DNA of 64,000 bases, taken from sequence record PV472050.1. One strand, given 5' to 3'. How positions within the stretch are numbered: the stretch's first letter is position 1; each line of letters opens with the position of its first letter. Positions 5,125 through 54,223 of the stretch are shown in pieces. The notes beneath the pieces were generated by a model. The model saw only the letters and a program-made list of their open reading frames with translations, ran no database searches and had not been told where the DNA came from. Made by a program: the position numbers and the translations under genes.

Positions 5125-5224
5125 TCCTCTACCTGCTCCACTGGGCTTAACGCTCCGGTGGAGCGGGGTAGGGGTTATTACCGCTTTAAATTTTTCAATA
5201 CACCAACCCAAAAAGGTAATAACC

Positions 5225-6109
5225 ATGCCGAAGAATGAGAACAATCCTGATAAACAAGGTCTTACGTCTATCTCTGATGAAGACTTGGATAAGGCACTCA
5301 ACGAACTGGACAACGCAGGGGAAGACGTAACTCCGGTGTCCAAAGAGACCGCTACGCAGCATCCGGGTACGTCGGACATCCTCAACCGCTATTCTCACCC
5401 CGCCCTTCAGCCGAAGAAGGGAACACCTGAATACATCGAGTGGAAAGCCGCTCTCAAACAGGAAGAGGACCGTTTAGTGGAATCCTTGAAGACTTCGGTA
5501 ACCCAGGAACATGAAGAGAATGTCCTGAAAGGGAATACCCTGGGTACTAAACCGAAGACCAAGCAGGTAGAAGGCCTGTTGGAGATGGTGGTTCGTAAGA
5601 AGGCTGAACTCACCCAAGAAGACACCGTAGACGCCGCAGAACGCGCATTGGCAGCGCTGAAGCGAGTACGGGAATATAACCGTAAGAAACGTATTCGACT
5701 GTGGTCCATGGTTGTTGGGCTCTTGGTGGTTGTGGGAAGTGGTCTCTATGGGGGGTGGATGTTCGTCCAGAAGCAAATGCTCACCGGTCATTACACCGTA
5801 GTCGCGGAGTGCAAAGTCCCTTACGGGGATTTTGAAATTACCGGTAAGCGGTACTACCGCTACGCGTATCAATCGATTCTGGGTTACCACCTCGTGGATG
5901 AGAGTACAGTCGAAGAAGTCACCGAAGTCAAACTCCCTGGGGATAAAATCATTATCCTGGGATTCGATGCGAGTAAAGGGAACTGGTGGCGGATGAACTA
6001 TGACCGGGGAGAATTCGGTACCGTTAAACTCAAGCCTACAGATAAGTACTGGTTCGTCGGTGAGAAAGACCGTACCACCCTGGTACCTTATCACTCGTTC
6101 TGCCATTAA
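5225..6109 (+). CDS. Putative single-pass membrane protein (294 aa)
   Basis: Hydrophobic stretch LWSMVVGLLVVVGSGLYGGWMFV preceded by RKKRIR (positive-inside), charged N-terminal half. Confidence 0.75.
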   Translation: MPKNENNPDKQGLTSISDEDLDKALNELDNAGEDVTPVSKETATQHPGTSDILNRYSHPALQPKKGTPEYIEWKAALKQEEDRLVESLKTSVTQEHEENVLKGNTLGTKPKTKQVEGLLEMVVRKKAELTQEDTVDAAERALAALKRVREYNRKKRIRLWSMVVGLLVVVGSGLYGGWMFVQKQMLTGHYTVVAECKVPYGDFEITGKRYYRYAYQSILGYHLVDESTVEEVTEVKLPGDKIIILGFDASKGNWWRMNYDRGEFGTVKLKPTDKYWFVGEKDRTTLVPYHSFCH

Positions 6110-16668: not shown

Positions 16669-16836
16669 AGAAGTAGATAGAGGGTTCGGTCATTAGACCA
16701 TAAAATTGGTAAATAAAATAGTACCCAAACCCATATTCTTCACTTACCTGGTTATTTAACTTGAGGTTCTTTTCAAACCTACATAATCAGGGTGAAGCAC
16801 AGACAGAGACCGTTTAACGGTCAAGGAGCCTTGTCA

Positions 16837-25072: not shown

Positions 25073-26419
25073 TTAATCCTCCTTTACAATCCCGTCTTGA
25101 ATCATTTGCCAGCGCGTGAACATCACGTATTTCACTTTACCAATACGCTTGGCCACACAGACCTTATCCAAGCGAGTCAGACGGGTGACCCCGGGAGGCA
25201 GCAAAGAGAACGGCGTAACCACTTCAGCGGCTGCTACCAGGTCCTCCATTCCACGGATAAACGCCATAGTAGCCTCACCCATGGATCCAAAATCAGGATC
25301 CAGGGAGGGGATCAATTGGTACTGGGGAACAATTGAACGAATCTTCTGCATCCCTTGACGATTGTTCTTTTTAGCCACAAACCCAATCTGAATCGATTTA
25401 TACAGCATGGGTAGGGTTTGGAAGGATTTTATGATGAAGTCTTCTGGTATTGTTGGGACCAAGTACTGCTTGGCAATATCGATTTCAGTCTCACGATCGA
25501 CAATGGGGGAGAACGAGCTAGCACCGGTGGTGCGGTCTACAATCCCAATCATGTCGAAACGGGGGATGGCATAGAACTCCAGCGGGTTGAAGAGATCGGG
25601 GATCTTTTCTTCCCAATCTTCACGGGGATACTTCGAATCTTTCAAGATCTCATCTTGAATCTGTTCGTAGAGCTGATCTTCCGCCTCGGTACCATTACCC
25701 CAGGACAGGATAGACCAGTACCCCATGTTGAACTTGCCGGTGTTAATCAGGTCAAGTATCTGGAATTCTTCGACGTTGCGCTCTGTATAGGGCCAGCCTG
25801 CATTCCGAGTCGCTTCATGTTCACGTTGCGCGATGACCGTCGGGGTTTCCCGTGCGAACCGTTCAGCAATCTGCTGATAGTTCATGGTCATCAGGTTGTC
25901 CATCTCGTTTAACGGGATGGGGTGGATAATCGTAAACTGAACACGGGGATACTGGATCAGGAAGTACGCGTCAGCCATCCACAAGTAGAACGGCTGCTTA
26001 TCACCACCCACGACATGATAGCCACGAACAAAGCTCGGTAGCCAGATGGTATTATTGGTGACCATTTCACCAACGTCTTCAATCACAACACTGGTGGTGA
26101 ATTGGGCTTTGAGTAGCGCAAGGGTGTTAGGACGACTGTCAGTGACTTTCCCACTAAGAGCTTGTTCATACAACCAGTTGGACACACCGATTTGAGCTTC
26201 AGCAATCGCTTGCGGCATAACAATCTCTGTTCCATCGGTTTCGGAATAGAAATTGACCAATACGGTTGCACTGGGACTGTTCGCAGCCAGGGTAAACTTA
26301 CCCGGGTCTTTGGCGTAACTGTTGGACTTGTTCGACAGCTCGCCAATAGGGGAGGTTGTGAGTAGACTGTTGTCGTGAAGCTTTGCTATACTTGCGAAAG
26401 AAAGGAACGTGGTACTCAT
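25073..26419 (-). CDS. Conserved phiKZ-type putative virion protein (448 aa)
   Basis: Long ORF with a GGTGAG RBS; function assigned from context only. Confidence 0.6.
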   Translation of the reverse strand: MSTTFLSFASIAKLHDNSLLTTSPIGELSNKSNSYAKDPGKFTLAANSPSATVLVNFYSETDGTEIVMPQAIAEAQIGVSNWLYEQALSGKVTDSRPNTLALLKAQFTTSVVIEDVGEMVTNNTIWLPSFVRGYHVVGGDKQPFYLWMADAYFLIQYPRVQFTIIHPIPLNEMDNLMTMNYQQIAERFARETPTVIAQREHEATRNAGWPYTERNVEEFQILDLINTGKFNMGYWSILSWGNGTEAEDQLYEQIQDEILKDSKYPREDWEEKIPDLFNPLEFYAIPRFDMIGIVDRTTGASSFSPIVDRETEIDIAKQYLVPTIPEDFIIKSFQTLPMLYKSIQIGFVAKKNNRQGMQKIRSIVPQYQLIPSLDPDFGSMGEATMAFIRGMEDLVAAAEVVTPFSLLPPGVTRLTRLDKVCVAKRIGKVKYVMFTRWQMIQDGIVKED

Positions 26420-44900: not shown

Positions 44901-46072
44901 AGTTGTGCGTATGCGTTATCCGCCCATTTCCCCAGTTCCGGGAATTGTTTCTTGAACTTAGCAACGTATTCCTTTCCCTTACGGGAATTGATCATCCGGG
45001 GGAGGTTGCTAATGAACATTTGGGCTGCAACGTTACCCACCATGGTCCCTACGTTGAGCGGCATGCCTTCCGACATCTCCGCCGCCATGCGCATGGCACC
45101 AATCAGGTCACCCGCACCTCGGATTCCGTCCCCTCGCGCATCCTTACCGAACCGCTCGTTAATAAACTCCCGTATTCCTCCAAAGGAGCCTTTAACCGTA
45201 TTGAAGACCGATTCCCGAATGCTCTTACGCATCGCTTGACTGTGGGTGGTCTTTTCGTAATCACTCTTAGCGGAGTTCACGGCAATGGTCTTCAGTTCAG
45301 CAATCATCCGGTGATTACTGGCTTCCATGAACTTGTAGAACTTCGCGCTGGTCAAATAGGAACGAGCCAACAGGTTCACCTTGAGGGTATCATTCCTCAA
45401 TTGAACTTTACGTTGGTAATTCACCATTTGTTCCAGCAGTTGGTTACTCCGCCCAATACTCAGGTTCAGGGTATTCAACCCCCCAATGGTGCGGCCGCCT
45501 ACTTCGGTCATCATGGCGGTAATACTTTCACCCACCCCAATGACCGTTTCCCGCTCTAACAGGGAGTTAGCATCTTCACTCCCCAGCAGGTCTTTCACAT
45601 CATTTTCGCCCACATTTTCCATGGACGGGGTGTCATTCACCGACGACGTATATGGCTTCCAACTGCTGAAGTCATTTTGACTGAACCGAGTCAGCCCACT
45701 GGCTACACCCCCGGTGATCTTATTAGGAGCTATTTTACCTAACTTGTCACTACCCCGTTTAGCCAAGTATTGGAGGTCCACGACTGCATCGTAGCTTTCA
45801 CGTTTAAGTTCGTCTACGATCTCTCTCCGACGACGGTTAATATCCGACGCCGTCGTAAAGGCAGTCCCCCAGGTCTTAGGGAGGACCATCTTCAGGGTGT
45901 TCAACCGAGCATCGGTGTCCCCTACTGTCTGATTCACTACACCTGACAAAAACCCGGTTGCTACCGAACGAATGAACCCCGGTTTCTTCCCATCGAAATC
46001 GGTATCGAAATCAATATCCCCAGTAAAGGGATCCTCTCCCCAATCGAAATCATCGAATGTATTATCCGCCAT
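41954..46072 (-). CDS. N-terminal part of giant tail lysin/tape-measure-like protein (phiKZ gp181 type)
   Basis: 1372-aa helical ORF, GGAG RBS, divergent from the RNAP beta' gene; continues into the next ORF after a -1 frame change. Confidence 0.8.
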   Translation of the reverse strand: MADNTFDDFDWGEDPFTGDIDFDTDFDGKKPGFIRSVATGFLSGVVNQTVGDTDARLNTLKMVLPKTWGTAFTTASDINRRRREIVDELKRESYDAVVDLQYLAKRGSDKLGKIAPNKITGGVASGLTRFSQNDFSSWKPYTSSVNDTPSMENVGENDVKDLLGSEDANSLLERETVIGVGESITAMMTEVGGRTIGGLNTLNLSIGRSNQLLEQMVNYQRKVQLRNDTLKVNLLARSYLTSAKFYKFMEASNHRMIAELKTIAVNSAKSDYEKTTHSQAMRKSIRESVFNTVKGSFGGIREFINERFGKDARGDGIRGAGDLIGAMRMAAEMSEGMPLNVGTMVGNVAAQMFISNLPRMINSRKGKEYVAKFKKQFPELGKWADNAYAQLTDLGNVASYNLSNAEGMVNTLSEYHNWGSSFDEDGDYEQYLSTLRSGQKPLGKVEWTVINTLKKGANKGMAGLLDEMYQPTGSRYSLKRRGLMDAHEPEIWNKQSSRTLNEVIPELLSHIHLSIEKIRTGDDTLKASSYDYVRGKLVSHNQKVADTFNRVMDKDQFKSQADTSLRLVDSIDPNKELSNEARRVLAMQLVQNADKRKGFSPYLYMNLETKGVNRQVADEIRELFQRNFDITPEAFTAFKEGSTLDRASAIARLPTEQARERAAKLTEQSNLLGRFMPDIAERVDMLRSSGYYNVMKEAGIIKSENGHDEVNMDTFRNVLQSFIDNPDRAMTYDNPLEEAVRKTRSFGRRGRGRRDAGGVIAAENAQLNETLQGVRETLDKLGAHIEQGGVSRSGLTDPSSLFTALNDQVTQGNSLLGKLVELGGNRNDILTKILERQPYEKTTPEAEEVIQQQKRSILERIKSTSFGDLFNKGIDKLLDNQPLVLGGLLGGLAGMAIYNPKGAALVGGGLALGMAYNKLRARAAARRAEDTEDLYEEGSDTPILESFKLFKGEYLDMLTGKIIQGWDQITGSIKDLANGAVIGASRLAGKLFTEDNKEVFLKGLNKVRDLFMKAFNWLDPVNRVKGLWDKARTRLYRMDIYIEGEDEPVLLGSRFGKGQYFKRSGDGFVELQGWDEIDGPVYDKEGNTLITAEEYDRGLKTSMGTSINKLGAGLKQAGQFGLDLFGKLKDRAGGYAKGMGGRVKNPFSTDHSPVVNSVDRIYYLLLKHWGYNSPDGSPNPFTPPAPGSQDGPEGPPGSLGDRNDLTLTEALMEKNPALKDALESFRAAKGKAGAGDNTDRFRRSASSSDATRANSLADRTQKLQEEKDNTVKNAIISIAENFGFGMKDEKELGKKKKFGIFGLLSSLVGGVKKGFEWLTSFLGSKVLWSGFSALFKFSRMGLKLLPIIAKGVAGGLGGLLNGLGDSDLVNWV

Positions 46073-46102
46073 TGTTAATGCACTCCCGCATAAGGAAACC
46101 GT

Positions 46103-47545
46103 ATGAAACCGACTAACATTACCCTCTTAGACCCCCGGACGATTGTTCCGGGTGTCTTTAAACCTATTACGTCTACGGACTCATTTGAAGGGATGACTCA
46201 GAACCTCAATGATGATGGTCTCTTCTCCCTTGACATCTTCGGTAAACTGGGTAGTAAACAACGTGATAACACGGAAGCGTATATCGACGTTAAACTTCCC
46301 ATCTTCAATCCCACTTACCTAAAAGCCCTTATACAGATCAAAAGTCTGTATCATTCAATTTTGAAAGGATCGGAATACGCGGTATGGGATCCCGAACTGA
46401 AGGATTTCATAAAATCGAACATCCTGGAAGGGGAAAAGGGTTTCGCTTTCTTCCTGAAACATTTTGATGAAACCGTCTTCTCCCTGACACCTTCTCATAA
46501 ACGCAAACAACGGGTAGAACTGGCGAACCAATTCCGTAAGACAGCGTTAACGGATAAGGTCCTGGTTATCCCCGCTGGTCTCAGGGATATCCAATTCAAT
46601 CCGGATGGTTCCCACACCGAACCTGAAATCACTGAATTCTACCGCGCCTTAATGTTCCGGGTGAGGGTGATCCTCGGGAATAAGGAAGATGCCCTGAACC
46701 CCCTTTACGATACCGTTCGGTGGGGGGTACAGAATGCTTTCTTGGAATTGGATAATTACCTCTTTGGTTTACTCCAGGGGAAAGGGGGTGTTCTCCAGCG
46801 TCGTATGTCCACCCGGGGGGTTCACAACAGCACCCGGAACGTCATTACCGCCCGTAAAGTCTCCAGGACACGTTTAGACTTCGACGACGGTGTAGGTCCT
46901 AACTCTGCGGACATGGGACTCTATCAAGCCCTGCTGAACTTCCCTTATGTCTGCATCAACGCGTTAACCAACGGCTACCTTTCCAACATCTTCACCCCCA
47001 GCTCTCAAACCGCTAAGCTGGTGAATACCAAGACCCTGGAATACGAATACGCTGAAGTCTCCCCTGAGGTGGTAGAGAAATGGACCACCGCCACCGGGTT
47101 AATGAAACTCTTCAACGGGTTTGCTGATCCCTCCCTACGGAGTAAACCCATTGTCATTGAGTGGAAATACTTAGCCCTCATTTATGATGATGGGACTGAT
47201 GTGTGTGTTCTCCATGACATCAACGATCTCCCTCAAGGGAAAGACCGTAAATGGGTGAAACCTATCACCTACATGGAACTCTTCTACTTGAGTTGCCACA
47301 GTGTCATCGAAGAACAGATTACAGGACAAACCCGGTATCCCATTACGGGGATTGGCTCTATCTTCCCGGCTAAGGTTAACCTACGTACCACCACCAATGC
47401 GAGCCAGCGGGTGATCCGTAATCCGATTGATTGGAGTGTGCGGGAAACCTGTAAACGGTTCCCTAAACGTGAAGCCCACCCCGATTACTTCGATGCCATG
47501 TCCGTAGACCCCTCTAGAGAAGCTTTGCTCGACAGTGACCATGAT
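46103..47545 (+). CDS. rpoC: Virion RNA polymerase beta' (phiKZ gp180 type), exon 1
   Basis: DDGLFS.DIFG, GH/I.L-P-like, VLVIPAGLRD and KGG...R motifs; ends ...DSDHD at the splice site. Confidence 0.88.
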
Positions 47546-49318
47546 TAGATAGTGATGCATGATATAAACTCACTATACAACTCCTATTGTATGCGGAAGT
47601 GTTCGCATTCGACCATAAGGAGTTGTAAAGATGTTAACGTGTTTTGGAAAGAAATACGTGTTGTCTACAACCAACACAGTTTACAATGTCACCGATAAGA
47701 CGGATGTTCCAGTCCATCGGATGGCAGACGGGAATACGTTCTTCATCGCACGGGGCGATGAAAACGAACTGGTTAAGATCAAACTGGGGTTAATGATCCT
47801 CCATGGAGAAGGAAAGTTCCATCTTCCTATCTCTGAATGGGAACAGGTGAAAGTAGGTTTTCTGGATGACGATACAGGAAACTTTGCAGCGGATAACCTT
47901 TACTTGGTCTATCCTGAAGAGGGCATCCCTTACCCTGAACTCTCTGGGTACTACTACATCCCTGGGTTTGAACTCAACGCAATCAACCGAGACGGTGTGG
48001 TATACCGAACACTTAGAAAGAATCTTTACCCACCGTATCTGGGTGGTAACACCGTTCCTAACAGTTTCTACCCCTTTGTTCGACTGGATGTGGTCAGTGG
48101 GGATGAACGCAAGTATGTCCACCGGCTACTGGCGGAGACCTTCGGTAAGCCGCCTAAGGGCTACCCCAAGCTACTGGTCGACCATAATGACGGTAACAAG
48201 ATGAACTTCAAGCTCTTTAACTTGATTTGGGTTACCGCTAAGAACAACACTTTCAAAGCGTACAACAATCAAGAAGCGAGAGCGGACAATAATCCCTTGG
48301 AGGTTTTTGACAGGGAATTAGGTCAAGTCTTTAAGTACGTCAGTCAAAATGAGTTTGCGAGAACCATGGAGGTGGATTCTTGGTGCATTAGTCTGGTACT
48401 CAAACGTCCTCGTTCAGTGTACAAGAACAGGTACGTTCTTCGTCGGAAGGGAGATACACGTGACTTCCAAGAGATCTGGGACTATAAACCCCCTGTGGGT
48501 AAGAAGATCCTTGCCCGGAATGTCTTCACCGGTGAAATCACGGTGTATAATTCATTGGCAGAGGCCTCTAGAGCAACACAGGTAGGGACAACAGGCATCC
48601 TGACGTCCCTGAGTAACACCAACCCGAGATCCGCCTTTAAAGACCTTCAATTCAAGCGGGAGTCTGACGAGACCCCTTGGCCCGATTTGAATGAATACGA
48701 ACTGGAATGCATCCGGCGCAAGATGCACCCTGCTACAGCTGTGTATGAAATGTTTGATTCGGTAACCCAGGAGACGTCGATTGTGTATGGCGTTGATGCA
48801 GTTACCCGAATCACTGGAGCCAATCCCCGTACCGTTATCGTTTGCGCACGAGAAGGTAAGTTGCTCCATTCCCGTTATCGTTTCAAGAAACTTACACGTT
48901 AACGCGTTTATATCCATCACTTAGTCCGGCTAGGCACGAAAGTCCTAGACCGTATTCCTCTGAATTGCTGGGAGTTCACAAAAGTCTGTTGGCTACAACG
49001 TAACTGGAAACAGTAAGCGTGAATGCGACCGAAAGGTAGAAAGAACAACAGACCTGACCTACGCTAACCAATAACGCTAAGGGTCGTAAACAAGGGACAA
49101 TCAGCCGCTAAGACGCTACCGGGTATTAGACCCTATGCGTAAAGTTCAACGACTAAGGGAGTTATGACCCTGTACACCTACCAAGGAAGGGGGTGGAAGT
49201 GGAGGAGACCTAAGGGGGGAATAGACCTATTCCCTACGGTCAAGATATAGTCTGGCCCTGTTTAATAGACAGGCAGGCACCTGAGCGTGCCGGGTCCTAG
49301 TATGGACTGACCACCGCG
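47546..49318 (+). mobile_element. Group I intron (1773 nt) with internal HNH endonuclease ORF
   Basis: Exon ends in U, intron ends in G; P AATTGCTGGGAG 48963, Q AATCAGCCGC 49099, R GTTCAACGACTA 49143, S AAGATATAGTCT 49242; splicing is in frame. Confidence 0.9.
47631..48902 (+). CDS. Intron-encoded HNH homing endonuclease with three NUMOD1/IENR1-like repeats
   Basis: YVHRLLAETF...VDHNDGNKMNFKLFNLIWVTAKNN; three C-terminal repeats of the type F...TGE...Y.S..EA.R. Confidence 0.9.
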   Translation: MLTCFGKKYVLSTTNTVYNVTDKTDVPVHRMADGNTFFIARGDENELVKIKLGLMILHGEGKFHLPISEWEQVKVGFLDDDTGNFAADNLYLVYPEEGIPYPELSGYYYIPGFELNAINRDGVVYRTLRKNLYPPYLGGNTVPNSFYPFVRLDVVSGDERKYVHRLLAETFGKPPKGYPKLLVDHNDGNKMNFKLFNLIWVTAKNNTFKAYNNQEARADNNPLEVFDRELGQVFKYVSQNEFARTMEVDSWCISLVLKRPRSVYKNRYVLRRKGDTRDFQEIWDYKPPVGKKILARNVFTGEITVYNSLAEASRATQVGTTGILTSLSNTNPRSAFKDLQFKRESDETPWPDLNEYELECIRRKMHPATAVYEMFDSVTQETSIVYGVDAVTRITGANPRTVIVCAREGKLLHSRYRFKKLTR

Positions 49319-49501
49319 GGCGATCAATTGTCGAGCCATTCTGTTGTAGCGGAAGACAGCAAACAACAGGCCTACGAACTCTTTGGGAAACGGGAGTATT
49401 ACATCAGTGGTACGGGTCGGTTTTTGTACGATCCGATCAACGAACCGATTCTCTTTATGTTTAAAGCAGCGACGAGCGGCTTAGAGGATATTGAGGTATG
49501 A
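49319..49501 (+). CDS. rpoC: Virion RNAP beta' exon 2 (60 aa, GDQLSSHSVV...EDIEV)
   Basis: Read manually; in frame after the omega-G, completes the DHD/GD motif; TGA overlaps the ATG of the beta gene. Confidence 0.85.
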   Translation, partial: GDQLSSHSVVAEDSKQQAYELFGKREYYISGTGRFLYDPINEPILFMFKAATSGLEDIEV

Positions 49502-52500
49502 GCAATCCAATTACGTATTCCGAGTTCTTTAAGCACTTTGTGCTGCGTAAGAAACAAGACGTTGTAAACCCTAAAGTCCTGGGTATTGGTGAAGTGATCC
49601 TTCCTAAGGGGAGTTTGCTGCACTTCGTACCGAAGACGGTTAATGAAAAGGGACCGGGTAGTAGTGAAGCGTTTATCAGTAACTTCCCTAAAGAGGTCTT
49701 TATTGAGTTTGTAAGGGACGGGTATAAGCCGGTGATGGGGCATGGGCGTACAGTCGCCTATGACTACCCTAAGGCGGTTAAGGCGTACCGGGCGAGTCAC
49801 TACATGTACAGCTGGGTGCGTGAGATCAGCACGGTGTACAACAAAGAGAACGTGCTAGTCGTTAAGAACTACGGGATGATTCCTCAGGGGTTCGTTTACC
49901 GTCCGAGTATTTTCGTGAATTATGAAAAATACTACAACATGATGCACCTGCTCATTGAGAACATCAATGCGGAAGCCGAGAAAGGGGTGCGTCGGCAGTA
50001 TATGCGGATTGACCTGCCGTTGAACCTACCGTCCCTGGTTGAGCTTGAGAAAGACTACGGACGGTTTATCGATGGGTTTAAGGACGGCCATCCTGTCCTG
50101 ATGCGCAATATGCTGGAGAGTACGAAGGCTGAGAACTGCTATTGGCTGTTGGACCTACTGGGGTTCCTGTTTGGCCAGTATTCGTTCAGTTTGTTCGGTA
50201 AACTCACCGACCAGGCGTATAAGGATTTGCATATCCTCTTTACGTCACAAAGTAAAGTCATTGTAGTACAACTGGGGCTGTTGAAGGGTTGGTTAGATGA
50301 AACAAATCCTAAAGACGAGAAAACCTACCCCTCTGCTCGGAAAGAGTTTGAAAGTCTGAAGACATTGACCCGCCATAATGCGGTTAAACGTTTCTATTTG
50401 GCTTTGATGAATCTTTCTCGTGGAGGCGTTCCTGAGAATGTACTCATTAAAGAGGAAACGAAAAATGTCATCCCAATTGCCGGAGAGAAAGGTACCGTTG
50501 ACCAAGTGGCTGCGGGAACGTCACGAGAAGAAGAAGAAGAAACATCCAATCTTCCAGAAACCCGAGACCATACTGGCTCGGGCACGGTTCCCCGTGCTGA
50601 TCGTCCTGCTGGTTCTATCCTTGATGTTTTCAGCCGAAGTGAAGGACCTGGCGAGGCACATGACGAAGAGCAAGACACAGCGGGAGAACGAGGTGCTGAT
50701 TCAAATCTTGAAGAGTGGACATCGCCGGTAGATGATGAACTACTGGAGGTGGAGAAAGTCCAAACCGAGATCAATACCAACAAGAATGTGTTTAAGACGC
50801 CTGAGAGTGGTGTAAAGCGGGCGTTGGAGGAGCGGGCTAAGGAAGGTACGCTGACGGTAGCTGAACATGATTTCTTCATGCGTAAAGCGACCCGTTATCA
50901 GCACATTGAAATGGAGAACGGTCAAACGTTCGAAGAGTTCATTCAGATTAAACCCGAAGAGGTTAAAGACCTGGGTGGAGAGATTGAAGGTGAGTTTCTC
51001 CCCGTACTGGATGAGAGCATGCTGCGGAGTCGTGCCAAATCCCTCAAGATCGAATATCCTCAGAAGTTTTTACACCGGGATATTGGTCGAATGGTGTTGG
51101 GTCTTCAGAACGCTGGCTTTGCGATGAACGACTATCGGCGTGAGAAGGTCGTCAGCGTAGAAGGTAGTTACGAGGTCCACAGCATTCAGTTGCACGAAGT
51201 CAATGGTGATCAGGTCACTGTACATACTCGGTTGCCTACGGTGCTGAAAGACGGCACCTACGTCATTGATGGTGTTAAGCAACACATGCAACTGCAACGT
51301 CGGGAGAAACCTTTCCGGAAGATCAGTCCTCGGGAAGTGGTGCTGTCGAGCTATTACGACCGTAAGCTCATGGTGAGTCGTAGTCCGAAGATGGTGGATA
51401 ACCTTTCTACGTTCATGGTGAAGCAAATCTCCCTCCAGAGTAAGCGGAAAGGGTATACGGTCACTAAAGGCAGTACTTGGGATCGCTCCCTTAAAGCCCC
51501 TCGGATTTACAGCATTCTGGCTCGTCAGTACAAGTACATTACTGTCGACGGGTTGGTATTGGACTTCCGGTTGAAGGATCTCCTGGAACTCCACCCTGAG
51601 TTCAAAGCCTATACCCGCCCTGATCGGTTCTTGATTGGGGTAAAAGACGGATTACCTTTGATCATTGATGATTACGGTAACCTGTACAAAGGGGAAGAGG
51701 AACTCGGTACTGTTGAAGACTTGCTCGGTATTGATGTTCGTAAAGCGCCTTTGGAACACGTGGTGATTAATATCAGCGGGTACTCGTTCCCGTTGGGGGT
51801 GGTTCTGTGCTTCTACTTCGGTATTGACGAACTGCTGCGGGTGATTAAAGCCACGACGCGTTCGGTACCCGTAGGAACCCGCCCTAAATTGACTGAGGAT
51901 GAATACGCGATTCAGTTCAATGACGAATACCTGATCTTTAACCGTCGGGAGAAGCTCACCACGTTGATCTTCGGTGGAATGCCGAAGTTGAACAACATCA
52001 GTAACTTCAGTCGGAGTGATTTGAATAATAACAGTATCTGGAGTGCGTTGATGGGAGACCCTCGGGTTCGTCCATCTCAGTTCCAGGAAATGAAGAACCT
52101 CTTCGATCTCTTTATCGATCCCATTACGAAAGACCTCTTGAAAGAGATGAAGCTGTCTGAAGACTTCCATTACTTGCTGATTGATGCAGCTAAGGCATTG
52201 GAAACGGATTACAGTCGACACGAGGTGGAGATTGAAGAGCAACGCATTGTAGGGTATGAACGCTTCGCAGGTCATCTCTACACGGAATTTGTAAAGTCCA
52301 TTCGTCAATACCGGAATAAAGGGAAAGGGCGTAAACACAAACTGGACTTTAATCCGGATGCGGTTATTATTGCCATTGGCACTGACCGGTCTACGAACTT
52401 GGTGGAGGAAGTGAATCCGGTTCACCAAGTGAAAGACCAAGAGGAAGTGACGTTTGGGGGTACGGGTGGTCGTAGTGAAATCACCATGGTCAAACGTGCG

Positions 52501-52698
52501 CGGACTCAGCTGGAGAGTTACAAAGGGGTCATCAGTGAAGCCAACAAGGACAGTGGTAAAGTGGGGTATGTGACCTACACCACCTCTGATCCGGGTATCG
52601 CTGATTTCCGAGGCAATGTTGATCCCAAGAACAAACGTACTCCTACTGGTGACGGTTCGGTTACCATGAACCTGATGTACGGTGGAACGCATGACGAT
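49498..52698 (+). CDS. rpoB: Virion RNA polymerase beta N-terminal subunit (phiKZ gp178 type), exon 1
   Basis: RpoB-like motifs LP......YVIDG, GGTGGR, GVISEA..DSGKVG, HDD; GAGGT RBS. Confidence 0.88.
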
Positions 52699-53104
52699 GA
52701 GTGTGGAAAACAATAGATCACTCAGTCCAACCAGGGAGTAATCCCTGGTTGCCATTACCTTTAATTGCGGGAACCTACTGAGAGCCTTATCACCAAACCC
52801 GAGCAGGAAACCAACGGGTGGCCAACCATAACGGGTTGGGGACGGAATAACGATAAGGATGGGGAACCCTACGCAGCGAAGCGCCTACGTATTGTCGAGA
52901 GGACAAGATAGGGTGAACGTTCAACGACTACGGATGAAATTTCCGGTAGAGGTGTCAGGATGATACTTCCAAAAGTAAGGTTGCCCTGTATGCTCGAGGT
53001 GGAATAACACTGAGTACAGGGATGAAATATAGTCTCGTCATCTAAGGGAAAACCTTAGAGCGTGGTGCTACGCGCACCGGCGGATAGGAAATCCGTGAAG
53101 TTCG
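52699..53104 (+). mobile_element. Group I intron (406 nt), ORF-less
   Basis: Exon ends GAU, intron ends in G; P AATTGCGGGAA 52763, R GTTCAACGACTAC 52919, S AAATATAGTC 53025 (P7 GACUA/UAGUC); in-frame join HDD/VKRAVF. Confidence 0.9.
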
Positions 53105-54223
53105 GTCAAACGAGCAGTATTCACATCGACTCAGGCCTCTCAAGCAGTGATGGCTAAGAACTACGAGATCGTTACCCTGAGAACGGGTTACGAGAACGTA
53201 CTGGCTCACCGGACCTCCGATCTTTACAGCAAAGTAGCTGCTGAAGATGGTAAGGTTACTAAAGTGGAGAACGATCGCTTACTCGTCGAATACAAGGACG
53301 GAACAACGGACTCGTATCCCTTAGGGTTGGTGATTGGGGAAGCCAGTGGGGAATATCATCCCCACAGCCGTACCACAGATCTGAAGGTCGGAGATACCTT
53401 CCGTAAGGGAGATGTCATCGGTTGGGATGAAAACTGGTTCGGTCGAGACCCCTTCTGCCCAGGGCAAGTCGGGGTTAAGATGGGTAAAATGTGCCAGATC
53501 GTTATGGTGGAAGACCAGGATGTGTACGAGGACTCTATTGCAATTTCGAAAGAATTGGCCATGGAAGCACGTACCCCATTCATTAAACCCAGTCGGTTTG
53601 CCGAGGACGTGTCAAACAACCTGGTAATGCGGGTTAAGGTAGGAGATTACGTCGAACAGGACACGATTTTATGTGATATCGAAGAGCCTCACTTGGTGGA
53701 GGGCGAGGAGCTTCCTGAGCTCGAAGCAGACATCAACAAACTCGGTATCAAACAGATCCGTTCGAAGCATCATGGAAAGATCGTACACATCGATGTTCGG
53801 TACAACTCTCCCTTAGACAAGATGTCTGAGTCGTTCCGTTCGTTCATTGTTCAGAAGGATAAGGAAACGAAACGGAAAGGGTTGGTGGAAGGAACCGGTG
53901 TCGAGAACAATGCCATTTCCACGATGTTCAATCTTAATCGTCCCATGTTAGGTCCAGGTAAGGCATTCATTACGTTCTACATCGAGTCGTTAGACCCGAG
54001 TACCAATGCGGATAAGTATGTCATTGGGAACCAGATGAAAGCCACTGTGGGTCGTATCATGGAAAGACCGCTTAAGACTGCCAGTGGGATTGTAATTGAT
54101 GTGAAGTCGAGCTTTAAAGGGATGTTTAACCGAATGGTGCTCAGTTTGAGGAACAAGCTGGTTGCTAACGAGTATGGTTACCAAATCACTCGCCAAGCCA
54201 TTAAACTCTACAGAGGTAAATAA
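53105..54223 (+). CDS. rpoB: Virion RNAP beta exon 2 (372 aa)
   Basis: VKRAVFTSTQASQAV, TGYE, VYEDSI and ADKY..GNQMK motifs of RpoB; frame is open from 53105. Confidence 0.88.
   Translation, partial: VKRAVFTSTQASQAVMAKNYEIVTLRTGYENVLAHRTSDLYSKVAAEDGKVTKVENDRLLVEYKDGTTDSYPLGLVIGEASGEYHPHSRTTDLKVGDTFRKGDVIGWDENWFGRDPFCPGQVGVKMGKMCQIVMVEDQDVYEDSIAISKELAMEARTPFIKPSRFAEDVSNNLVMRVKVGDYVEQDTILCDIEEPHLVEGEELPELEADINKLGIKQIRSKHHGKIVHIDVRYNSPLDKMSESFRSFIVQKDKETKRKGLVEGTGVENNAISTMFNLNRPMLGPGKAFITFYIESLDPSTNADKYVIGNQMKATVGRIMERPLKTASGIVIDVKSSFKGMFNRMVLSLRNKLVANEYGYQITRQAIKLYRGK

Follow-up and report, generated by a model that had tools for sequence, protein, structure and literature searches.

A predicted late-promoter switch nested in the Shine-Dalgarno hairpin of an intron-encoded HNH endonuclease in an EL-type jumbo phage

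The control of a homing endonuclease by a hairpin over the ribosome binding site together with an internal late promoter is proven for I-TevI of bacteriophage T4, and was reported for I-TevII, I-TevIII, segB and Aeh1 mobE (reviewed in PMC2988022, with the work of Gott et al. 1988 and of Gibb and Edgell). In this study we analyze a 64,000-nt stretch of sequence record PV472050.1, called the window below, in which an HNH endonuclease gene within a group I intron of a virion RNA polymerase (RNAP) gene is preceded by a hairpin that covers its Shine-Dalgarno (SD) sequence and encloses the tetranucleotide TATG. The window is the last 64 kb of the genome of an EL-type Pseudomonas phage (Elvirus, a nucleus-forming jumbo phage), and over a compared 4-kb stretch it is 100% identical to phage MIZ-Pa99 and 98.8% identical to phage EL. 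The original prediction for this locus proposed that the T4 logic had arisen here with a jumbo-phage late promoter. The precedent it drew on is confirmed by PMC2988022, and the likeness to the T4 intron endonucleases turns out to be exact, since the endonuclease proves to be intron-encoded, as judged from the intron's core and junction, a circumstance that had escaped the original prediction.

Like I-TevI in the td intron, the present endonuclease is encoded by an open reading frame (ORF) that occupies a peripheral loop of a group I ribozyme, in an intron that interrupts an essential gene; a stable hairpin is likewise predicted to pair the SD on read-through RNA, and a late-promoter motif is so placed that the 5' arm would be dropped. 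The differences lie in the parts. The T4 late promoter TATAAATA depends on sigma-gp55 and is read by the host RNAP, whereas the motif here, ATNNTATG, is a start-site element that would be read by a phage-encoded multisubunit non-virion RNAP. I-TevI is a GIY-YIG enzyme and the present one is of the HNH type; the operator of I-TevI resembles its homing site and overlaps the promoter, giving autorepression, while no homing-site-like operator is detectable here. Finally, the T4 switch is proven, whereas that of the EL-type phage is predicted from sequence.

As for the promoter, the late promoters of phage phiKZ indeed carry TATG at the start site, as the original prediction had stated (PMC4666361): the non-virion RNAP of phiKZ needs TATG, starts at its G and binds the four bases in a pocket of gp123 (PMC4666361, PMC12809450). 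The motif studied here resembles these promoters (e.g. P119L; Ceyssens 2014; Yakunina 2015, PMC4666361) in its TATG core with the G as predicted +1 and in its occurrence tens of nucleotides upstream of late structural genes, and EL encodes homologous RNAP subunits; it is unlike them in length, the phiKZ element being given as the 4-nt TATG (PMC4666361, PMC12809450) and that of the EL clade being the longer AT-N2-TATG, a form that is not known to have been described before and the activity of which is predicted. As for the endonuclease, the virion RNAP beta gene of phage PhiPA3 has a group I intron that encodes gp210, a nicking homing endonuclease of the HNH type (Birkholz et al. 2024, PMC11620839). 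Gp210, too, is a jumbo-phage intron HNH enzyme in a virion RNAP gene at catalytic aspartates with an SD-sequestering hairpin in its leader; unlike the present one, it lies in another gene (gp211/209, the homologue of EL gp186/187 and not of gp184), belongs to another endonuclease lineage and has ATGTTATAG instead of ATNNTATG in the hairpin loop. No hairpin, promoter or Shine-Dalgarno sequence is mentioned in PMC11620839. The introns of phiKZ gp180/gp179 have been predicted since 2002 (Mesyanzhinov 2002), and their splicing was not detected by ONT-cappable-seq. They share with our locus the host gene, the split catalytic motif, a homologous HNH enzyme (about 25% identity) and an SD-pairing hairpin, while the phiKZ insertion lies 6 nt upstream (GAD/, the slash marking the insertion site here and below) and its loop motif is ATCCTATAG. 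The view that such a switch was undescribed for this locus holds: a full-text literature search, which turned up the T4 paradigm and the phiKZ promoter work, gave no report of SD hairpins or internal promoters for intron endonucleases of jumbo phages.

The hairpin itself proved more extensive than first described. All the positions given for it are correct (CTCCT at 47581-85, AGGAG at 47618-22, TATG at 47590-93, the endonuclease ATG at 47631), and the pairing of CTCCT with AGGAG extends to a perfect 10-bp inverted repeat with the arms TACAACTCCT and AGGAGTTGTA. The SD AGGAG stands 8 nt before the ATG, the outer stem ends 3 nt before it, and the 32-nt loop holds the inner stem that had also been proposed, ATGCGGA (47591-97) with TTCGCAT (47602-08), 7 bp including one G-U pair. 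By RNAfold this hairpin is the minimum-free-energy (MFE) structure; the region 47549-47660 folds at -32.8 kcal/mol (z = -4.4, stability matched by 0 of 200 shuffles) and 47570-47650 at -22.2 kcal/mol (z = -2.8, 1 of 200). The mean pairing probability of the SD was dropped as a control, being unspecific with high values for many genes, and the opening energy was used instead, namely the cost of unpairing the SD hexamer within its -70 to +20 context: it amounts to 12.5 kcal/mol here against a median of 3.4 for 63 other genes in the window (rank 4 of 64). The gene behind the hairpin is a homing endonuclease, as had been supposed, both by its location in a group I intron and by its HNH_3 domain (PF13392, residues 161-206 of the 423, E = 1.9e-10, 40.6 bits, cut-off 24.8). 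We consider the hairpin very probably a functional translational block.

That an inverted repeat and a 4-mer merely happen to precede a gene is hardly credible. TATG is just 4 nt, to be sure, and several ordinary genes in the window also have paired SDs; yet 64 kb of random sequence should hold 2.3 perfect inverted repeats of at least 10 bp with a loop of 3-40 nt, and both the recurrence in 14 lineages and the statistics of ATNNTATG given below speak against coincidence. Most real repeats of this kind in the window are short-loop intergenic hairpins resembling terminators; a terminator scan found no terminator-like site at the endonuclease hairpin, and a sigma-70 promoter scan found nothing there. 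Perfect 10-bp inverted repeats also run up to the start codon in two further genes of the window, that at 1165 (repeat 1135-1163, with the SD GGAGGG in the 3' arm and an opening cost of 18 kcal/mol) and that at 5225 (repeat 5173-5224, loop of 32 nt), both without ATNNTATG.

Full-length homologues of the endonuclease, with 33-55% identity, occupy the same gene in other jumbo phages, and the leaders of 14 divergent jumbo-phage intron-HNH genes were compared. Beside that of EL, the set comprises leaders of annotated phages (Raoultella phage ZK_P1, Photobacterium phage PDCC-1, Vibrio phage 2 TSL-2019, Shewanella phage FishSpeaker and phiKZ gp179), of metagenomic contigs obtained by protein search (P0003 to P0010, 34-55% identity) and of other endonuclease lineages (PhiPA3 gp210, whose intron is in a different RNAP gene, and phiKp_32). 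A related-locus search of viral and metagenome contigs gave 0 new relatives, while the protein search with contig look-up did find some. In all 14 leaders the MFE fold places the SD in the 3' arm of a hairpin, the stem of which ends 0-10 nt before the AUG, and the arms are unrelated in sequence, for example CUAUCU/AGGUAG, GUUACAACC/GGUUGUAAC, CACUCCA/UGGAGUG, AAUGCUC/GGAGCAUU and GUCUAUACUCCAA/UUGGAGGAUAGAC. In the long leaders, opening the SD costs 4.4 to 12.5 kcal/mol, and all these values fall high within the EL background distribution. Within the EL-type strains the sole variant in the leader, 47612 A>G, falls at an unpaired position. By this comparison of folds, the hairpin is a structure kept through sequence turnover.

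Regarding the promoter, it had been conceded that TATG may occur by chance, and this worry is justified for the tetramer alone: with 897 copies in the genome it is uninformative, plain TATG is enriched upstream of genes only 1.5-fold, and TGTATG shows no enrichment there; a signal emerged once the AT-N2 prefix taken from the relatives (see below) was included. The worry does not extend to the present copy, which ends an 8-nt promoter-like motif, ATTGTATG. In 9 of 13 lineages, against about 2.8 expected, TATG follows the anti-SD arm directly on its 3' side (P = 1.7e-4, dinucleotide-preserving shuffles), and among these nine anchored leaders there is an A at -4 in all, a T at -3 in eight and a C at -6 in seven, with the flanking columns near random. 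As A at -4 and T at -3 are kept, the conserved element is AT-N2-TATG, i.e. ATNNTATG, of which the EL-type leader carries an exact copy; the G of this copy, G47593, is located 8 nt 3' of the hairpin's 5' arm and 38 nt upstream of the endonuclease ATG.

The consensus, derived from the other phages, was examined in the complete EL-type genome of 209,813 bp with 235 annotated starts. It occurs 32 times on the two strands, and 17 of these copies put their G 15-100 nt upstream of a start on the same strand; because 4.8% of positions qualify, 1.5 would be expected, so that the enrichment is 11-fold (binomial p = 1.2e-13, with the endonuclease copy excluded). None of 15 other dinucleotide prefixes, 12 core variants and 5 alternative spacings was enriched in the same genome. 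Genes downstream of copies in promoter position include those of the major head protein, a baseplate protein and two virion structural proteins, as well as two operons with virion structural genes. In the window, ATNNTATG is depleted (9 copies against 22.3 +/- 4.5 in shuffles), which fits selection against stray promoters. What is more, exactly one copy stands between the major capsid gene and its upstream neighbour in each of five genera, 52-88 nt before the start: ATTTTATGTG in EL and in RisingSun, ATGTTATGTG in FishSpeaker, ATTCTATGTG in PDCC-1 and ATCTTATGCG in N1M2. For the capsid gene of the record, the predicted transcription start is the G of ATTTTATG at position 86889. These positions argue that ATNNTATG is best read as the late-promoter consensus of the EL clade, and we hold it probable that ATTGTATG in the intron leader is an active promoter.

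Several observations on promoter-like motifs stand beside this result. Downstream of ATNNTATG, the capsid leaders of the five genera share a palindrome (gCGAACAAAtaTATTTGTTt and variants; L018 36866-36947, L038, L039, L040, L041), likely a conserved hairpin of the 5'-untranslated region as far as its sequence tells. A copy reading ATTTTATG lies inside the gp184 coding region on the minus strand (46408-46415). From there it is about 330 nt downstream to 46072, where the divergent tail-fibre gene starts, and the copy is a candidate late promoter for the tail-fibre operon, where the intergenic space is just 30 nt; other copies within genes are at 25426 (+), 53666 (+) and 63810 (+). There is also a second strong promoter-like consensus, T-rich and then AAACCTACATTAT, at 16778 and 33834 of the window (162591 and 179647 of the record) and at six more sites in the genome, 14-85 nt upstream of mostly hypothetical, non-structural genes; to judge by these neighbours, it is probably an early or middle promoter class of the EL-type phage. 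The phage's strong promoter-like motif beside ATNNTATG, TTTTAAACCTACATTAT, is absent from the endonuclease leader, and the T7-like string ACTCACTATA at 47569-78, conserved in no relative's leader, was treated as chance.

The AUG within UAUG offers a different use for the motif, namely as the start of a short ORF whose translation would unwind the 3' arm and couple to it the translation of the endonuclease. Such coupling would suit ZK_P1 and P0010, where the stop of this frame overlaps the endonuclease AUG (UGAUG / AUGA). Against it, no SD precedes these AUGs and the anti-SD arm stands there instead; the frame stops at once in P0005, P0006 and P0007 (AUG-UAA or AUG-UAG) and runs for 36 codons in EL; the conserved bases continue on the 5' side of the AUG (A at -4, T at -3, and TA ahead of TG), where a start codon requires nothing; and the same 8-mer recurs at the distances from capsid gene starts given above. 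We regard this coupling as very improbable.

In the arrangement we favour, read-through RNA from exon 1 of the virion RNAP beta-prime gene, be it precursor or excised intron, would have its SD paired in the 10-bp stem, and the endonuclease would stay untranslated. ATTGTATG inside the hairpin would serve as the on-switch, a late promoter of the non-virion RNAP: a polymerase starting at G47593 would make an RNA lacking the 5' arm, with SD and AUG open, and translation would take place from this short RNA alone. Promoter motif, hairpin and ORF make up a cassette that lies in a terminal loop, the one closed by a long-range helix of the intron, and precedes the ribozyme core. The folding of long and short leaders agrees with the effect foreseen for them, as the cost of opening the SD falls from 12.5 to 2.9 kcal/mol for RNA from G47593, in which the entire 5' arm is missing, most of the SD is unpaired by RNAfold and just a 5-bp 5'-terminal stem remains (GCGGA/UUCGC). 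A start at the G of TATG lowers the cost in each of the nine TATG lineages, to 0.5-5.7 kcal/mol. With the SD hairpin in 14 leaders, the genome test of ATNNTATG and the opening of the SD in nine lineages, the proposed T4 logic has gained good computational support, and we put the probability of the complete switch, hairpin and internal late promoter together, at about 0.65. We infer from the sequence a start at G47593, a timing later than the transcription of the host gene, and a difference in translation between the long and the short RNA.

A number of points weigh against this switch. The leader is identical in EL, GXNNE2 and HHBS8, and for this reason the close relatives yield no covariation; the 14 leaders share ancestry, so that lineage counts are not independent trials and the P values drawn from them are upper-bound impressions. 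The NN bases of ATTGTATG (TG) differ from the commonest TT and TC. In 5 of the 14 lineages (phiKZ gp179, PhiPA3 gp210, P0003, FishSpeaker and TSL/PDCC-1) the loop has ATNNTATA followed by G, A or T. FishSpeaker and PDCC-1 use ATNNTATG at their own capsid genes, and their endonuclease copies are therefore one-base departures. In phiKZ, where TATG is needed but does not suffice, single substitutions in it sharply lower transcription in vitro (PMC4666361). The ATNNTATA copies may thus be weak, dead or differently used, and on this account promoter activity at 47586-93 cannot be assumed. By analogy with phiKZ, the host gene, which encodes a virion protein, would be a middle or late gene; the switch would then part read-through RNA from dedicated late RNA, not early from late, and T4 would offer a 'late-only' switch a wider temporal window than this phage does. 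When the leader is aligned locally with the intronless target, the best match (GACAGTGA-CCATGAT/GATAGTGATGCATGAT) gives no evidence of a homing-site-like operator (P = 0.26 against shuffles) and lies upstream of the promoter motif. Four public runs over 46000-50500, with even depth, Nextera adapters and 0 spliced joints, are DNA-like, and hence mute on start sites and splicing.

Some of these points suit a simpler arrangement, in which the hairpin is a constitutive throttle that damps a potentially harmful nuclease on every transcript and ATTGTATG is unused, kept for another reason or a decayed relic. Sequestration of the SD is found in 14 of 14 leaders, while the perfect promoter consensus is missing in five (TATA for TATG), TATG is not sufficient in phiKZ (PMC4666361), and about 15 of the 32 genomic copies of ATNNTATG lie away from gene starts. 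Yet a motif that is counter-selected in the genome has been kept in nine lineages in which the flanks of the leader are randomised, always 3' of the anti-SD arm, the sole position able to relieve the block, and pure damping requires no conserved 8-mer. We therefore judge the throttle unlikely, though it deserves to be kept in mind.

The setting of the switch in the intron rests on the following features (Table 1). The model RF00028 matches over its full length directly after the ORF, with 48.4 bits (gathering score 50) and E = 1.6e-10, and its alignment indicates an IA2-like core with an insert of P7.1/P7.2 type. The core is homologous to that of EL intron 2 (itself 52.2 bits) and that of the Vibrio phage VP4B intron, where the same ribozyme has no ORF. 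The intron begins with an in-frame stop TAG, its last base is G49318 (omega-G), and the best P1 candidate, read by eye, pairs GUGAUG (47552-57) with CAUGAU, with a G-G mismatch at -3; a bulged version of P1, also read by eye, is present in the P0004 phage. Promoter motif, hairpin and ORF are enclosed by a long-range helix in which 47551-69 pairs with 48906-21, and helices bracketing the ORF at the same position but with different sequence occur in ZK_P1, TSL-2019 and P0004 (duplexfold/cofold). For EL intron 2 the bracketing helix was read by eye, the folding program having chosen another pairing; long-range helices were judged by inspection, the z-scores of duplexfold being uninformative.

This neighbourhood raises the thought that the hairpin is a peripheral element aiding the fold of the ORF loop, its pairing with the SD being incidental. 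It stands 6 nt after the long-range helix, and the second intron endonuclease of this genome has the 13-mer ACAACTCCTATTG again at its 5' end. Still, the ORF-less VP4B ribozyme does without such an element beside a start codon, the counterpart region of EL intron 2 folds no better than shuffles (z = -0.3), and the 3' arm is the SD in every lineage with the stem ending 0-10 nt before the AUG, even for PhiPA3 gp210 in its different RNAP gene, all of which makes a purely architectural role improbable.

Table 1. Coordinates in the window of the intron, its host gene and the elements of the putative switch
Feature	Position	Strand	Basis
Exon 1, virion RNAP beta-prime N-terminal subunit gene (EL gp184 homologue)	46103..47545	+	MIZ-Pa99 and EL annotation
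Group I intron, 1,773 nt	47546..49318	+	Rfam core + protein junction
Long-range helix, 5' strand (AGTGATG..GATATAAAC)	47551..47569	+	cofold, duplexfold
Hairpin 5' arm TACAACTCCT, includes anti-SD CTCCT	47576..47585	+	inverted repeat, RNAfold
ATTGTATG, exact copy of ATNNTATG consensus; predicted start G47593	47586..47593	+	motif from other phages' leaders
Inner stem-loop ATGCGGA-AGTG-TTCGCAT	47591..47608	+	RNAfold
Hairpin 3' arm AGGAGTTGTA, includes SD AGGAG (47618-22)	47618..47627	+	inverted repeat, RNAfold
HNH homing endonuclease ORF, 423 aa (EL gp185 homologue)	47631..48902	+	Pfam
Long-range helix, 3' strand (GTTTATATC CATCACT)	48906..48921	+	cofold, duplexfold
Group I catalytic core, P2 to P9 region	48908..49272	+	Rfam RF00028
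Exon 2, same virion RNAP beta-prime gene (GDQLSSHSVVAEDS...DIEV, then stop)	49319..49501	+	tblastn junction

The ORFs that flank the endonuclease are annotated as pieces of the virion RNAP, and the junction was placed by tblastn against intronless homologues, with two queries, the last part of the upstream ORF and the open frame that precedes the downstream gene. Both queries match adjoining codons in N1M2 and USC-1, where GGD[F/Y]DGDQL is uninterrupted; the translation of exon 1 ends in ...LLDSDHD, with T47545 as the final base, and removal of the intron restores the conserved frame. Because the intronless homologues read GGD[F/Y]DGDQL unbroken, the EL-type gene reads ...LLDSDHD/GDQL.... The splice sites lie after T47545 and after G49318, the U and the G before them being as in group I introns, and the next RNAP gene begins at 49498 with an ATG that shares bases with the stop TGA of exon 2. 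On the evidence of this alignment, the intron splits the catalytic DxDGD motif of the virion RNAP beta-prime-like subunit. Public annotations omit exon 2 from gp184 and end the gene at the stop codon of the intron. The first intron bases, 47548-47563 (GATAGTGATGCATGAT), resemble the last 15 bases of exon 1, 47531-47545 (GACAGTGACCATGAT), though not significantly so (P = 0.26 against shuffles); the resemblance is not seen in the P0004 relative.

Codons of the DxDGD motif are a hot spot of intron insertion, with sites at GGD/YDGDQL in TSL-2019, GAD/ in phiKZ gp180, DHD/GDQL in EL, DFDG/DQL in Aeromonas PS2 (a different ORF-less intron of about 260 nt) and YDGD/QL in VP4B. The EL-type genome also has an insertion at NA/DFDGD, in its paralogous gene for the non-virion RNAP. 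A second group I intron in the window, without an ORF, lies at 52667-53060 (RF00028, 34.8 bits, E = 3.8e-7) between the homologues of EL gp186 and gp187. Of the two RNAP ORFs on either side of the gap 52717-53149, the upstream one reads ...GGTHDD and then ECGKQ to a stop, so that by its reading frame this intron probably follows two conserved aspartates, the site of the PhiPA3 gp210 intron, and the small 'hypothetical' ORFs annotated in the gap are probably spurious. Outside the window, the non-virion RNAP beta-prime gene of the same genome has a second intron with an HNH endonuclease (L017 29663-31040; RF00028, 52.2 bits), the core of which is homologous to that of the window intron. The 13-mer ACAACTCCTATTG is common to the 5' part of this second intron and the hairpin 5' arm; in L017 it falls inside the annotated ORF, and from the sequence it is more likely that this ORF starts at the in-frame GTG 29704, after AGGAGG. 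The L017 endonuclease is present in some EL-like genomes only, with no tblastn match in HHBS47_1, HHBS8_1, GXNNE2 and GXNNA8. The taxonomy line of PV472050.1 files MIZ-Pa99 under Straboviridae, despite the 98.8% identity to EL over the 4-kb stretch, while the close relative GXNNE2 is filed as Chimalliviridae; Elvirus.

The EL-type phage encodes a nuclear shell protein and the PhuZ tubulin, and transcription and translation are reported to be separate in nucleus-forming phages (PMC12908238, abstract). If the switch is confirmed, one and the same solution, in which an endonuclease is silenced on host-gene RNA and has its promoter in the hairpin, would have evolved twice with unrelated transcription machineries, and would hold even where a phage nucleus separates transcription from translation, a setting that weakens the usual rationale of keeping ribosomes off a folding ribozyme. 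It would also provide a natural pair of long and short leaders for the study of mRNA export and translation control in nucleus-forming phages, and it bears on when the intron endonucleases that mediate competition between co-infecting jumbo phages, such as PhiPA3 gp210, are made. At the same time, ATNNTATG would give a concrete promoter consensus for a clade whose late promoters have been puzzling, the bare TATG being too short to account for their specificity. Beyond this locus, we lean slightly towards regarding such cassettes as portable modules of nucleus-forming jumbo phages, each with its own late promoter ATNNTATG nested in an SD hairpin. Should this be true, the I-TevI switch of T4 would have been re-invented independently, here with a promoter at the start site. 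Elvirus and its relatives would have their first defined late-promoter consensus in ATNNTATG, an extension of the 4-nt phiKZ motif. An 8-nt promoter grammar would then be common to genera whose hosts are Pseudomonas, Raoultella, Klebsiella, Erwinia, Shewanella and Photobacterium, so that a cassette arriving by homing would be expressed correctly in its new phage.

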